Assembly (NCBI GenBank): GCA_021613535.1
Contig: CP075494.1
Span: forward strand, 9,796,001-9,860,000
From: Adineta vaga
Lineage: Eukaryota; Animalia; Rotifera
Reading direction: 5' to 3'
Length of the DNA stretch: 64,000 bases
Below are positions 3,746 to 10,525 of the stretch, one piece after another. Both the position numbers and the translations under genes were made by a program. Below the pieces are notes generated by a model, which did no database searches, was not told the origin of the DNA, and worked only from the letters and a program-made list of their open reading frames with translations. Each line of letters starts with the position of its first letter. Position 1 is the first letter of the stretch.

Positions 3746-4445
3746 CAGAGAATTGTATATTATATGAATAAATTTACTAGAATTTACACACTATCCGTTT
3801 TTAACGTAAGATGGTCATAGTAGTTTGTCCGGTTTTCTATGTTTTGATAGATCTTCATTATCGATGATTAGACCATTAGAGATTGTTGATAATCTGATTA
3901 CCACTTTGTATTGTAACGTTTTGAAATCTGAATCACATGATTTTCTGAATAATAGTTATAGTTAATTTTGGTTAAGGTCACCTGTGTTCTTTGTTTTGTG
4001 AAAGTTGTGTGTATTCCACAAACATTATTGAGCAGAAATCTCAGTATGTGAAGTCAGCATTTTGTCCTACTAAAAATCCCTACGTATGCTTCTTCGGTGC
4101 AAACCAAAATTTACTTTTGTCTGAAGAATTGAAGATCAAGACGTTTTTCTTTCTTTCTTTTTTTATGATATTGTAAAGCACATGAGTAATAAATCAAAGA
4201 CTTAGGAAAGCTCAGACGACACAAAACAGTATTGACTTTCCTGTAACGTTTCTTTCTCTCCTATTTCTATGAAATGATGACTTTGAACAATCATATCCGA
4301 GCAAAATCAGACAATTTTCAAATGATTCAATATTCATCACAAGACATGCTAAGTCGTATAAATAATGTGTTCAAATCTCAGATCCTCAACAACGTTGATC
4401 GTCTTTGAGCTGGCCTCTTCTTTCTTCAATACAAAAAACCACAAC

Positions 4446-5195
4446 ATGTTTTTCTCCAAAATTATACTCGTCATCGTTATTTCATTTGCATTAGCTGATC
4501 ATCGATCGAAACATGATGACATGTGTCCATTCACACGAGATACTCTCTGTGTTAAGGATCTACTCATGACCATTGCAATTGTGGCACGAAGTGTCGATAG
4601 AACAGTAAATGAGATCGAAAGAAATATTCTCTTCAAATATCCAGAAATTGAAACACTCAATCGCTATATTAACTTTGAAATGAGTCACATTCAACCTGGT
4701 CTACCAACACCGCAGTTTCATGTCAGATTCTTCCAAATGAATAACATTGATAAGGTATGAAAGAGTCAAAAATTCGTCATATACTCTATGTTACCATCAT
4801 TGTTGTCATAGAGCTATCTGGTAAATCTTCTTCTAGAAGCACACAATGCTATAAGCTATTATTATAAATCCATTAATACAATTTTGGCTATGAAAGAGAT
4901 TACATCTTTCACAAGTGATTTATGGTTTGAACAAATTCGAAACAATCTTCGAGACGAAATGATTTGCCGATATCGAAATGTCTTAAGTGTATATTCAGAT
5001 GTATGGCCATCAATAAATGAAGTGAATGAAATTCAGTTTTCTCGACGAAAATATGCAAGTTCACCATCAATGGTGCATGATGTACATGCGATGATAGTAA
5101 TTCGATTGTTAAGATATTGGACGAATAAAATAAATGGTGTTTTAACGAATATGGAAAGTAAATACTATTCAAGAACAACGAAAACTAAGACATGA
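4446..5195 (+). CDS. Secreted helical protein, paralog A (230 aa); candidate long-chain helical cytokine
   Basis: Exons 4446-4754 and 4812-5195 (phase-0 intron); signal peptide MFFSKIILVIVISFALA; paralogous to 6958-7776 and 8610-9353; TATAAATA at 4357-4364. Confidence is for the gene model; function is inferred. Confidence 0.85.
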
Positions 5196-5301
5196 TTAAA
5201 AAGTTTGCTATTTTTTTTAATATGAATATCGATCGTCTTTTAAATAATAAATATCATTGATTCTGAACACTATTAATTCTCTTGTTGATTACTTAAAGAT
5301 A

Positions 5302-6220
5302 CAGGTTGATTCACTTATTTTTGCTCATTTTGCTTAGTCTACTTTGTTTCAGCAAACTTTCAAAACGTTTCTGTTTTTATATGGTTGGATAGAGCATCGA
5401 TTACTCTATCGAAACATATAGTTTTCATTTATACGTATTTGATTCTAGTCTGAAAATTTTATCAATCTCTAAGAAGTACTAAAAAAAAACTTTTGCAGAG
5501 CTATTTTCTTGAAAAAATCTATGTATTTTACCTTACAAATAATTTTTTATTCTTTACACTACCCTAGCCGTTTCAAAATTTATTTCGAAACATTTAAAGC
5601 AGTGAAAATATCGAAAAATGCTACTATTATTTAAGAACTTTGTTTTGGAACATTTTAAAGGATTTTCATAATATTTTAAATATTTGATCTAAATAAACAA
5701 TTTGACTTTTTTTACTATGTACAGTTTGTAGAGTTCGATGAGCTCTATCAAACTATGTAAAAATATTTAAAGTAAAAACTTTTCTCCAGTGCTGAATTAC
5801 AGACATCTCAACTCTGTGCACCAAACAGTGGATGAAGCTTTTAAAAATTGATTTAGCTGGATATCAAAAAGTTCGTATAACCCTTACTATTTAGTACTAA
5901 TAAATAGTATCTTTGACGAGCTTTCATTTAATATAAAATTCATTATATACTCTCTGAAGTAATATCAATTGCAACCGTATATTATATGCACATAGCATCG
6001 CAAAATCGTTAAAATAATGCAGGTTTTCAAAAAAAAATTTTCGTACTTTTTAAAGATTGAGAAAATTTTTGGATTGGAACCAAAGAAGAAAAAATGTTAA
6101 TTACTGTTTCGATAGAGTAATTGATGCTCTATCTAACTATATGAAAAAAGAAACGTTTTGACAGTTTGCTAAAACACAGTAAACAGAAGAAAAATGAGCA
6201 AAAATAAGTGAATCAACCTG
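5302..6220. mobile_element. Non-autonomous Tc1/mariner-like element with long TIRs
   Basis: TA|CAGGTTGATTCACTTATTTTTGCTCATTTT ... AAAATGAGCAAAAATAAGTGAATCAACCTG|TA; inverted similarity is clear for about 115 bp and patchy to about 200 bp; no ORF in the track. Confidence 0.88.
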
Positions 6221-6957
6221 TATATGTGAACACTTCTTGAATAGATCTAAAAGAAAACGTGTTCGTTCTCACTCATCAAATAGTATTTTGACTTTATTTG
6301 TATCGTAAACATATCATTTGCATACTGTATACATCATTTAAAAGAAGTAGATTATCAAACATGTGGAATCTGCAATTGCTGAATTTTCACAACAATAAAC
6401 ACTGTAATCAATATCTATGCGTTTTTATTCAGTATATGTTTCTGGACAGATATAACGTACAAGTGTTACATATATGAAACCACGGATGAAAATCTCAAAA
6501 AAAACGCTCTGTAGAGAACCCGTCGCTCATCGATCATTTCTGATGTTCATTTAAATTTCAAAGTCTAATGTCTCATCTACACACACATCTGTTACTTCAT
6601 CTACGTCATAAGCATATATTCAATAGTGAGTACTGCCGATATATGTCAGCAATTCTAAGTCATAAATATTTGTTTTCAATGACGCGTTGTTCATAGCTCA
6701 TAGACTATGATATTGGAATAATCCTATATAAAAAAATCCAAGATGATGACGATTATTGTATATGTTTGCTTTGTTGTCGAGTAGATATTTTGAGGGAAAA
6801 CATCACGTACAGATCGTCTGAGAAATATACTATTTAAACGGCAGTTTGCCGTCATAATCTTCACACATCTTAGTTTTTCTACTTTCAACGTTGATCGTTG
6901 TGAATCTTACGAGCTGGTCTCAATCTTTCAAAGTTTCACAAACAAAAAAAAACCGAA

Positions 6958-7776
6958 ATGACTGCTAATTCAGTTCTTTCTATTTTAACCTTGGTTTTGA
7001 TATCACTTGGTATCGTACCTATATTTGGTTATCATCATAAGAAAACATCTGATGGCTTATGTCCTGAAATTCGTACCGTACTCTGTTTCAAAGATGTTGT
7101 TAATAATATTGCAAATAATGCAAAAGACATCAATAATGTTGCTCATCAGATTAAACAACAAGTAAGTTTTGTGTGAATAATTTTTCTTCGTATCAATGAA
7201 ATTCATATCTTATCGAATTCTAGATTAGAAAAGAATCATCACATTTAGATCTCGACGGATATATTGCACATAAAATGGACTCTTTACGAGACTTTTTACC
7301 ACAATCTAAATATCATCATCAATTTAAGAGTGTGCAGAATAATATCAATCGAGTATGTTTATCCAACTATGTTTATTCAAGTTAAACAGTTTTTTTTTCG
7401 TTTTTCATTTTAGACTGATCTTCTCAATCTATTAAAAGAACAAAATTTTGCTTATACATATTTATACAATTCGATAAAAAGTGTTCTCAAACTAGAGAAT
7501 ATCTTTGCTCCATCCATAGATAAATCTTTCAAAACAATTTTATATAATATTCAAAAGAATATTTTATGTAACTATCGAAACATTTTCTATACGTATTCCG
7601 AATTCGTTTCATCTGTTGATGATATTAGTGGAATACCAATAGCAAATAGACGGAAACGTCATGCACCATCAGTAATGCACAACTCATACTCAATGATTAT
7701 TGTTGAATTATTAAACGAATGGATGAAACATGTCGAAAGTTTTGTTAAGAATCTTGAAACTAAACTTTTACGTTGA
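6958..7776 (+). CDS. Secreted helical protein, divergent paralog B (231 aa); candidate long-chain helical cytokine
   Basis: Exons 6958-7161, 7224-7352, 7414-7776 (both introns phase 0); signal peptide; shares CPx6CxKD, CxYRN, RRK, PSxxH and LLxxW with paralogs A and C. Confidence 0.85.
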
Positions 7777-8609
7777 GCGTCCCAACAAAAATGCTGGCCA
7801 TTTTTTTATTGTTTTGATTTATTTCTTTTGCTTCTTTCATATAATAATTTCAATAAATATTTTATTAATCCATGGGCGAGACTTGTTATATGAATGCTTT
7901 TAATTTGTAGTTAGTTTTGAATAATAATAATGAGGAGAAGAGTTACTGATATTTGTCTTTCCTTATTGATCTATTACTTGCATATGATGTTAGTAAGAAA
8001 ATCTTTGAGAAATATTTTTCAAAACTAATAAAATTCAATCTAATAATTTTCAGTCAATTTTATATACTTTTTCAGTTTTAGCCTAAGATGATGATGTTAG
8101 GAAGAACTCTACCACTTTTCGTTTCTAAGCTATTGATGATAATTACGAATTTCTACATGTCTGCAACCTACACAATATGGATGGTTTGAAGAAAATAATA
8201 TAAATTCCACTGAACAGCGTCACAAAGTCAATATTCGCCTATACTAGGAAATTATCATATATATCATCTGCCTACAATATGAACTTTCAAGAGAATGCCA
8301 TTCTTTTATCCTTATATCATGATATCAATGAACATATGAACATTGACAATAAAGCAAAACTCATGAAAAATATAAAAAAACATCCAATAAAAAAATCAGC
8401 TTTGTTGGAATATCCTATATTCCTTTTCCAACTAGATTATGATCATTCTGAACGGTTTTATGAGTATAAAATCAGACCTTTTCACATGATTATAATTTTT
8501 TCACAATACGGATATAAGCATATAAAAGCCTCTCTCAAGCTTCATACTTCCAACAACATTGATCGTCTTCGAGCTGGCCTCTTCTTTCTTCAATACAAAA
8601 AACCACAAC

Positions 8610-9353
8610 ATGTTTTTCTCCAAAATTATACTCGTCATCGTCATTTCATTTGCATTAGCTGATCATCGATCGAAACATGATGACATGTGTCCATTCACAC
8701 GAGATACTCTCTGTGTTAAGGATCTACTCATGACCATTGCAATTGTGGCACGAAGTGTCAATCGAACAGCAAATGAGATCGAAAGAAACATTCTCTTCAA
8801 ATATCAAGAAATTGAAACACTCAATCGCTATATTAACTATGAAATGGGTATCATTCAATCTGATCTACCAACACCGCAGCTTCATGTCAAATTTTTTCAA
8901 GTCAGCAATATCGAAAGGGTATAGGAAAATTTAAAGTTCATTTACTCGAATCTGTTATTGTAGAATTATTTAGGTGATCTGATGTTGGAAGCACACAATG
9001 CTTTGAGCTATTATTACAAATCTATCAAGGGAATCTTGATTCTGAGAGATATCGCATCGTTCACAAGTGATTTATGGTTTGAACAGATCGAAAACAATCT
9101 TCGATATGAAATGATTTGCCGATATCGAAATGTCTTAAGTGTGTATTCACGTGTATGGCCATCAATAAATGAAGTGAATGAAATTCAGTTTTCTCGACGA
9201 AAATATGCAAGTTCACCATCAATGGTACATGATGTTCATGCAATGGTAGTAATTCGCTTATTACGCGAATGGATGCGTAAAATATATGCAGTGTTGATGA
9301 ATGTAGAAGCGAAATACTATCCGATTTTGATGACAGCAAAACCGTCGGCATAA
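8610..9353 (+). CDS. Secreted helical protein, paralog C (232 aa); candidate long-chain helical cytokine
   Basis: Exons 8610-8918 and 8964-9353 (phase-0, 45-nt intron); near-identical to paralog A in patches; TATAAAA at 8521-8527. Confidence 0.85.
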
Positions 9354-9521: not shown

Positions 9522-10525
9522 TTATGAGTTGAGACCATATAATAGAAAATCCATTAAATAAATTTCTTGTGGTTTCATGTAATGATATGAAACACTTCGA
9601 TCACTGCAACAGTTGTAATGCTAGATACATAATTTATTTTTTAGAAAAAATGAAAAAATATTTCATTCTCTTACTTTTTTCAATGGATTTTCTGCATAGG
9701 TTTTCAACCATTTTGGAAATAAACCAAGAAAATGTGCACTAAAAGATAATGGATGAAACAAATCACGATTCTCTTCATCTGTTGATCTGCCCACATAAAC
9801 ACCATGTTCTCGTAGACATTTAGCGATTTCAATATCTTCCATTCCACCATCTTTACGACAGGTTTTATTATCAGAATTCTGATGAGCTTGATAGAAACGT
9901 TTCAATGCTTCACGACTTAATACATAGGATGCTCCACCAGAATGATAACCATTATCTACAAGAACCTAAAAGAAATGAAAAAGATGTTTTTAAAGATCAA
10001 TTTTCGAAAGATATTTACCTTAAAATTATATCCAAATGTAACCGGTTCTGATGGATCTTGTAATTTTAGAAATTCTTTTAAATATTCCACAATTAAATAT
10101 GTATCATCATCTGCTTTTACAAACCAATCAAATGCATGAAAATAATTCTTATAAGCAAACAAGAATGCTAATACAGTTTTTTCTGTTAAATGTTGATAGC
10201 CAGGTTGAATATTATCAATAGGTGCAATTGGTATTCGTTTAGCAAATTGTTTTTGTTTGTATGTCATGTTTTTGTGTGCATATTCACTTATAAAAAACAA
10301 TCCATCACAACGTAGTCCCCATGTTGAGTTTATTGCTCGTGCACGTGTAAAAAAATATTTCGGTGAAGTTAATACTAAACAACATATACTTCCTGATCTG
10401 TTTGAATAAGTATCGAATGTGTCATCATCAAAATCGTTTCCAAAATTGATCTTTATGATTATGATCAATGCTATAATAAGGCAAAATACAATTGTCGTCC
10501 GAAAAATTTGATGTATTGTAATCAT
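9522..10525 (-). CDS. C1GALT1: Core 1 beta-1,3-galactosyltransferase (T-synthase)-like
   Basis: Type II TM anchor, TWGLRCD, DWFVKADDDTY, SGGASYVLSREAL, EDIEIAKCL, CCSDRSVSYHY. Confidence 0.9.

Follow-up and report, generated by a model that had tools for sequence, protein, structure and literature searches.

Three tandem Adineta vaga genes encode putative secreted proteins with a predicted long-chain helical cytokine fold and belong to a bdelloid-wide family

We analysed a 64-kb window of the genome of the bdelloid rotifer Adineta vaga (C5:9796001-9860000 of an assembly of 100.8 Mb in six contigs; "the window" means this whole stretch, and positions are counted from its first nucleotide). Three genes on the + strand between 4446 and 9353, here called g1, g2 and g3, encode proteins of 230, 231 and 232 residues. 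The evidence points to a bdelloid-wide, fast-evolving family of secreted ligands with a cytokine fold, a reading to which we assign a probability of roughly 0.6. The exons of the three genes, the g1 intron and the elements of the predicted proteins that they encode are the following:

4446-4754, + strand: g1 exon 1, with the putative signal peptide (codons 1-17), the C-P-x6-C pair (C27 and C35), helix A (about codons 36-64) and an A-B loop with two short helices
4755-4811, + strand: g1 intron, 57 nucleotides, GT..AG, phase 0, at the start of helix B
4812-5195, + strand: g1 exon 2 including the stop codon, with helix B, the short B-C turn, helix C with the conserved cysteine (ICRYRN), the C-D loop and helix D
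6958-7161, + strand: g2 exon 1, with the putative signal peptide, the C-P-x6-C pair and helix A
7224-7352, + strand: g2 exon 2, with the A-B loop and its short helices
7414-7776, + strand: g2 exon 3 including the stop codon, with helices B, C (LCNYRN) and D, in the order given by the model of a g2-type relative
8610-8918, + strand: g3 exon 1, rebuilt model
8964-9353, + strand: g3 exon 2 including the stop codon, 80% identical to g1 exon 2

To predict the fold, we ran AlphaFold2 without templates on an 87-row family alignment including the window exons, for the mature A. ricciae ortholog of g1 and g3 (residues 66-278; 68-70% identical to both) and for the mature g2-type protein of Rotaria socialis (residues 24-231; 41% identical to g2). 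The mean predicted local distance difference test score (pLDDT) was 91.3 and the predicted template modelling score (pTM) 0.88 for the A. ricciae protein, and 92.6 and 0.90, respectively, for the R. socialis protein; all five models of each run lay between 88 and 93 in pLDDT, and the long crossover loops reached 94-97. The two models agree in their helix order: helix A (29 residues) begins right after the second cysteine, a long A-B connection that includes two short helices leads to helix B (27 residues), a turn of 3-6 residues to helix C (28-31 residues, with the conserved cysteine 8 residues before its end), and a C-D loop, about 25 residues long, to helix D (33-41 residues). The predicted bundle has the up-up-down-down order, the long A-B and C-D crossovers and the helices of about 25-40 residues that characterise the long-chain class I cytokines. 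The helix limits listed above for g1 were carried over from the A. ricciae model through a gap-free alignment of 230 residues with 68% identity.

A Foldseek search of the PDB gave no match below an E-value of 0.001; its best rows were almost all G-CSF, growth hormone, IL-11, LIF, CNTF, prolactin, IL-6 and IL-27, with probabilities of about 1 and target-normalised TM scores up to 0.78. When this list was re-scored, the top 50 rows were cytokines without exception, G-CSF scoring 15.8 over 166 of 168 residues at 2.9 Å, and CLCF1, OSM, IL-27p28 and leptin were further top matches, with alignments spanning nearly the full length. In this structure search, which was exhaustive, the first non-cytokine was a membrane transporter (9.6), and ferritin and Dps bundles scored at most 8.7 and covered half of the model. 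The g2-type model returned the same ranked list of structures. An assignment of the fold to the long-chain class I helical cytokine type is well supported by these predictions.

The same families were reached from the primary sequence by a language-model feature search, in which the nearest named ESM-Atlas clusters were cardiotrophin-1/CNTF (0.93) and LIF_OSM (0.92), with Hormone_1, a mollusc cluster partly annotated with Pfam IL6 (0.90), IL-12 alpha, IL6/GCSF, IL-11 and LIF also near; a shape-based search of the ESM Atlas yielded nothing beyond partial ferritin-like matches. Pfam searches with the seven exons and 16 full-length relatives returned sub-threshold noise only, with IL6, GCSF, IL11, LIF_OSM and CNTF unmatched at E-values up to 10, and the family profile retrieved coiled-coil noise and no cytokines from the PDB sequences.

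The gene models had been proposed in a preliminary description of this DNA made from the letters alone. Its three same-strand genes with four phase-0 introns agree with our rebuilt models, its C-P-x6-C pair, conserved cysteine motifs (ICRYRN and LCNYRN) and terminal helices are all present, and the long-chain four-helix cytokine architecture that it put forward is borne out by the AlphaFold2 models of relatives, the Foldseek matches (G-CSF, CNTF, IL-11, LIF, OSM, IL-6 and leptin) and the embedding search. The four introns all have GT..AG borders and, since each exon length is a multiple of three, all are in phase 0. At the protein level g1 and g3 are 83% identical, and g2 shares about 30% identity with either. 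By inspection, each of the three proteins begins with a hydrophobic, signal-like segment and has a C-P-x6-C pair leading directly into helix A; precursors of 230-232 residues with such segments would suit, in size and secretion, the long-chain class I cytokines, whose mature chains have roughly 160-210 residues. The C-D loop of g2 carries a furin-type R-R-K-R before helix D (7648-7659), which may mark proteolytic processing. Related basic sites are seen in g2-type relatives (RKRK, RRKR, QKR), and g1 and g3 carry RRK at the corresponding position.

Both g2 joints (7161>7224 and 7352>7414, GT..AG) were found exactly as modelled in assembled contigs of runs X1 and X3, which come from two studies, and the X1 contig extends past the g2 stop to 7888, as a 3′ untranslated region (3′-UTR). 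Contigs of runs X1 and X2 cover part of g1 exon 2, and the junction of g1 is spanned by none of them; a single contig of low depth (X10) passes unspliced through the g3 intron and may represent DNA or pre-mRNA. In the public annotation, the NCBI model of g1 (I4U23_025053, 219 residues, with residues 93-219 100% identical to g1 exon 2) uses an upstream GT donor that deletes 11 residues of the family-wide FFQxNNIDK motif, which lies at the start of helix B in the 4446-5195 and 8610-9353 genes, and the NCBI model of g3 (I4U23_025055, 226 residues) loses 6 residues of it in the same way. Because these models drop part of a family-conserved motif, those of the preliminary description fit the family better. 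Adjacent paralogs have also been fused into single proteins of 356-473 residues in the public A. ricciae (L020, 10001-12314) and Rotaria annotations, with loss of the helix D end of the first gene. The public record thus mis-splices two of the three genes of the trio and merges neighbouring paralogs in A. ricciae and Rotaria.

Three cysteines recur, invariant or almost so, across the 16 full-length relatives; two of them precede helix A and the third lies in helix C. In LIF, N-terminal cysteines are bonded to the end of helix C, and the positions in the predicted models are compatible with a LIF-type arrangement; the structural alignment to LIF also reaches into the N-terminal segment. As regards the introns, that of g1 and g3 and the second one of g2 fall exactly at the start of helix B, and the first g2 intron lies about 4 residues before the end of helix A, a position at which the LIF, CNTF, IL-6 and G-CSF genes are likewise interrupted in phase 0. 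As evidence for a cytokine, four phase-0 introns out of four are weak on their own.

A six-frame search of the A. vaga assembly found at least 10 loci of the family, three on C5, five on C2 (a cluster at 8.775-8.790 Mb) and a single one on each of C3 and C1. Beyond A. vaga, phmmer with g1 exon 2, run exhaustively over 1.84 billion representative proteins, returned 66 clusters at 50% identity, and two word-seeded profile searches returned 21 proteins each. The named members are all bdelloid (A. vaga, A. ricciae, A. steineri, Rotaria magnacalcarata, R. socialis, R. sordida, Rotaria sp. Silwood1 and Silwood2, and Didymodactylos carnosus), and the remaining rows are unnamed environmental fragments; a sandfly row with 18% identity was repetitive and was taken as spurious. 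As far as these sequence searches reach, the family appears to be specific to bdelloid rotifers. Purifying selection is evident: the ratio of nonsynonymous to synonymous substitution rates (dN/dS) between g1 and g3 is 0.32 (dS 0.35), which together with the 66 clusters argues that the trio does not consist of chance open frames.

A maximum-likelihood tree of 26 rows contained a g1/g3 clade (support 100/99), a C2-type clade (100/100) and a g2-type clade (99/99). Since the last two each hold Adineta and Rotaria sequences, the main duplications are older than the split of these genera. One of the fused Rotaria models consists of a g2-type and a C2-type half, so the adjacency of the two types is old as well. 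The A. ricciae locus is syntenic with the window: a g1-like gene is followed by the g2 and g3 orthologs, annotated as one fused protein of 473 residues, and then by an opposite-strand Fringe/galactosyltransferase-like gene. Horizontal transfer or viral capture finds no support, with all relatives bdelloid, introns present and the position syntenic between the Adineta species.

The preliminary description had further proposed that the trio encodes ligands of the JAK/STAT pathway, comparable to the Drosophila upd1-3 cluster, a claim that our searches do not support. We searched the whole A. vaga assembly in six frames with Pfam profiles. STAT_bind, STAT_int and STAT_linker had no match in the genome and STAT_alpha a single one of 19 bits, which proved to be a coiled-coil exon (L011); the JAK FERM_F1 and FERM_F2 profiles were likewise without a match, and JAK SH2_1 gave only matches of 23 bits, which belong to a membrane-anchored generic SH2 protein (L016, L017). 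For the class I receptors, whose cytokine-binding module has two FN3-like domains and a WSXWS motif, the IL6Ra-bind, EpoR_lig-bind and Lep_receptor_Ig profiles were without a match in the genome; since divergent receptors, Domeless among them, are known to escape these profiles, this negative says little. Control searches by the same method returned 149 kinase-domain and 65 SH2 matches, which indicates that profile searching works on this genome. A group of open, repeated exons 1.28-1.30 Mb downstream (C5:11139800-11165000) gave no support for a STAT with Pfam (10 exons), PDB sequences (3 exons), the SH2 profile or the Atlas. The canonical JAK/STAT components would appear to be absent or very diverged in this animal, non-detection being no proof of absence. 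For signalling through JAK and STAT, one of the features that define class I cytokines, no counterpart was detected here, with four STAT and three JAK-specific profiles negative. The preliminary description had itself named a genome without class I receptor, JAK and STAT as a result that would speak against its pathway claim, and the outcome, with none detected, comes close to it.

Among the candidates set aside in these searches, tandem kinases at 4.415 Mb of C1 (L019) that might have been JAK-like turned out to be an array of small kinases without FERM, and a kinase match at C2:13.27 Mb to belong to NEK-type kinases. The former array (C1:4415248-4417703) and another at C4:9485305-9487776 each hold three small kinase domains in tandem, two of them in one open frame of 618 residues, with neither FERM nor SH2; they look like a lineage-specific kinase expansion.

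On our reading, the mature proteins, of about 210 residues, would fold into a long-chain up-up-down-down bundle of the IL-6/G-CSF/LIF/CNTF type and would most likely be secreted and act as extracellular signalling ligands. After removal of the signal peptide a disulfide between the N-terminal cysteine pair and the helix C cysteine would probably pin the bundle, as in LIF, and the helix faces would engage a cell-surface receptor. Several points weigh against this reading. The family has no homology to any cytokine family at the level of Pfam and PDB sequences, and the genome searches detected neither a receptor nor a JAK or STAT. The modelled proteins are the A. ricciae ortholog and the Rotaria relative, not those encoded in the window. 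Evidence of expression consists of assembled contigs only, from runs whose RNA status is a guess, apart from the spliced joints of g2, both of which are evidence of RNA. Finally, the number of conserved cysteines is odd (three), which implies a free thiol or an intermolecular bond. This odd number and the conserved adjacency of the genes raise the question of heterodimer pairing, for which a predicted complex of adjacent g2-type and C2-type proteins scored 0.42 versus 0.29 for the control, which speaks neither for nor against pairing.

The alternatives differ in how much of this picture they keep. If the trio were the counterpart of the Drosophila upd1-3 cluster, encoding ligands of a gp130/Domeless-type class I receptor that activate JAK and STAT, it would be natural that the closest structures are gp130-family and G-CSF cytokines and that the genes form a tandem cluster of diverged paralogs as upd1-3 do; with STAT, JAK-specific and class I receptor domains not found in a genome in which the kinase and SH2 controls worked, and with the weak matches otherwise explained, we regard this as rather unlikely. 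The fold could also be convergent or re-used in a secreted protein that is no receptor ligand but might serve in the matrix or egg coat, as a carrier, or in connection with defence or desiccation. However, the up-up-down-down order with two long crossovers is uncommon outside cytokines and hormones, the ferritin-like matches extend over only half of the model, the sequence-only embedding points to cytokine families, and the size, the signal peptide, the clustering in tandem and the rapid divergence are all in keeping with ligands, so that re-use of the fold seems distinctly improbable. Least of all do we expect the fold to be an AlphaFold2 artefact, in which amphipathic helices were packed with the wrong connectivity: the alignment is indeed shallow in its N-terminal half, where many rows are C-terminal fragments, and no experimental structure exists, but ten template-free models (five in each of two runs) agree in their high confidence, crossover loops included, and two subfamilies only about 30% identical yield the same topology and the same ranked lists of matches, which makes such an error extremely unlikely.

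A bolder version of the ligand reading takes the family as a true and very old spiralian branch of the IL-6/G-CSF/LIF superfamily, expanded to at least 10 genes in an animal without recognisable JAK, STAT or class I receptor. We consider it conceivable but doubtful. If it held, long-chain cytokines would here signal through a receptor and transduction system that is either another one or diverged beyond recognition, and the origin of this ligand class would lie before the protostome-deuterostome split, uncoupled from JAK/STAT.

In comparison with known systems, the G-CSF/IL-6/IL-11 group has no sequence similarity to the bdelloid family and a different cysteine pattern, and the bdelloid A-B loop is longer, with two extra short helices. 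LIF has two cysteines in helix C, whereas the bdelloid family has one, and the FxxK-type site-III motif of LIF, OSM, CNTF, CT-1 and CLCF1 is not recognisable, by inspection, at the start of the bdelloid helix D, nor is there a Pfam match to this group. Growth hormone, prolactin and leptin gave lower scores than the gp130/G-CSF group, have no sequence similarity to the family and differ in their disulfides. Drosophila Upd1-3 resemble the trio in that they, too, form a tandem cluster in an invertebrate and are rapidly diverging secreted proteins predicted to be helical-cytokine-like; the Upd ligands act via Domeless, Hopscotch and Stat92E, counterparts of which were not found in A. vaga. Upd proteins are also much longer than those of the bdelloid family. 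Our exhaustive sequence searches gave no credible arthropod relative, nor did a Domeless-like gene come to light.

For vertebrates, long-chain class I helical cytokines have been well documented, and the invertebrate cases are essentially the Unpaired ligands of arthropods. A 2026 survey detected IL-6-family ligands only in vertebrates and Upd in insects, with rotifers unsampled (PMC13203501). The literature that we searched held nothing on rotifer helical cytokines or rotifer JAK/STAT. A bdelloid-wide multi-gene family with a cytokine fold would offer a handle on the age of this ligand class, and it makes one ask how cells signal to each other in these animals, which are noted for their asexuality, their tolerance of desiccation and their unusual immunity genes. 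With JAK, STAT and class I receptor domains apparently lacking, the identity of the receptor becomes a directly testable matter.

The genes of the trio also share an element upstream of their start codons:

4395-4413, + strand: TTGATCGT-N4-GAGCTGG, 33 nucleotides before the g1 ATG
6891-6917, + strand: TTGATCGT-N12-GAGCTGG, before the g2 ATG
8559-8577, + strand: TTGATCGT-N4-GAGCTGG, before the g3 ATG

With a spacer of 4 or 12 nucleotides this motif occurs exactly three times in the 64 kb, 33-41 nucleotides before each ATG, where none would be expected by chance. It also precedes the A. ricciae orthologs and was not found in the C2, C3 and C1 paralog loci examined. Since it is conserved even where the encoded proteins share only 30% identity, it is probably a common promoter or 5′-UTR element, which suggests that the trio is co-regulated.

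A few observations concern the evolution of the locus, whose G+C content is about 30%, as throughout the window. The DNA of g1 and g3 is 96-98% identical over the 5′-UTR and the start of exon 1 (4400-4600 versus 8564-8764) and in a patch of exon 2 (5000-5100 versus about 9160-9260), and between these patches only 68-75% identical, with dS of 0.14 in exon 1 versus 0.57 in exon 2; this mosaic suggests local gene conversion. The Fringe/galactosyltransferase-like gene adjoins the C5 trio (9663-9905 of the window, - strand), the C2 paralog cluster (L003, 48-494) and the A. ricciae locus (L020, 12455-13200), and the shared flank is consistent with the C5 and C2 clusters being copies from an old genome duplication. 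Between g1 and g2, at 5299-6223, lies an element of 925 bp with terminal inverted repeats, the outer arms having 37 nucleotides (97% complementarity) and the following arms 89 nucleotides (85%); it looks like a miniature inverted-repeat transposable element or a foldback transposon. Contigs of two runs match it at 6051-6222 and then continue into a different flank, which indicates that other copies exist and may be transcribed.

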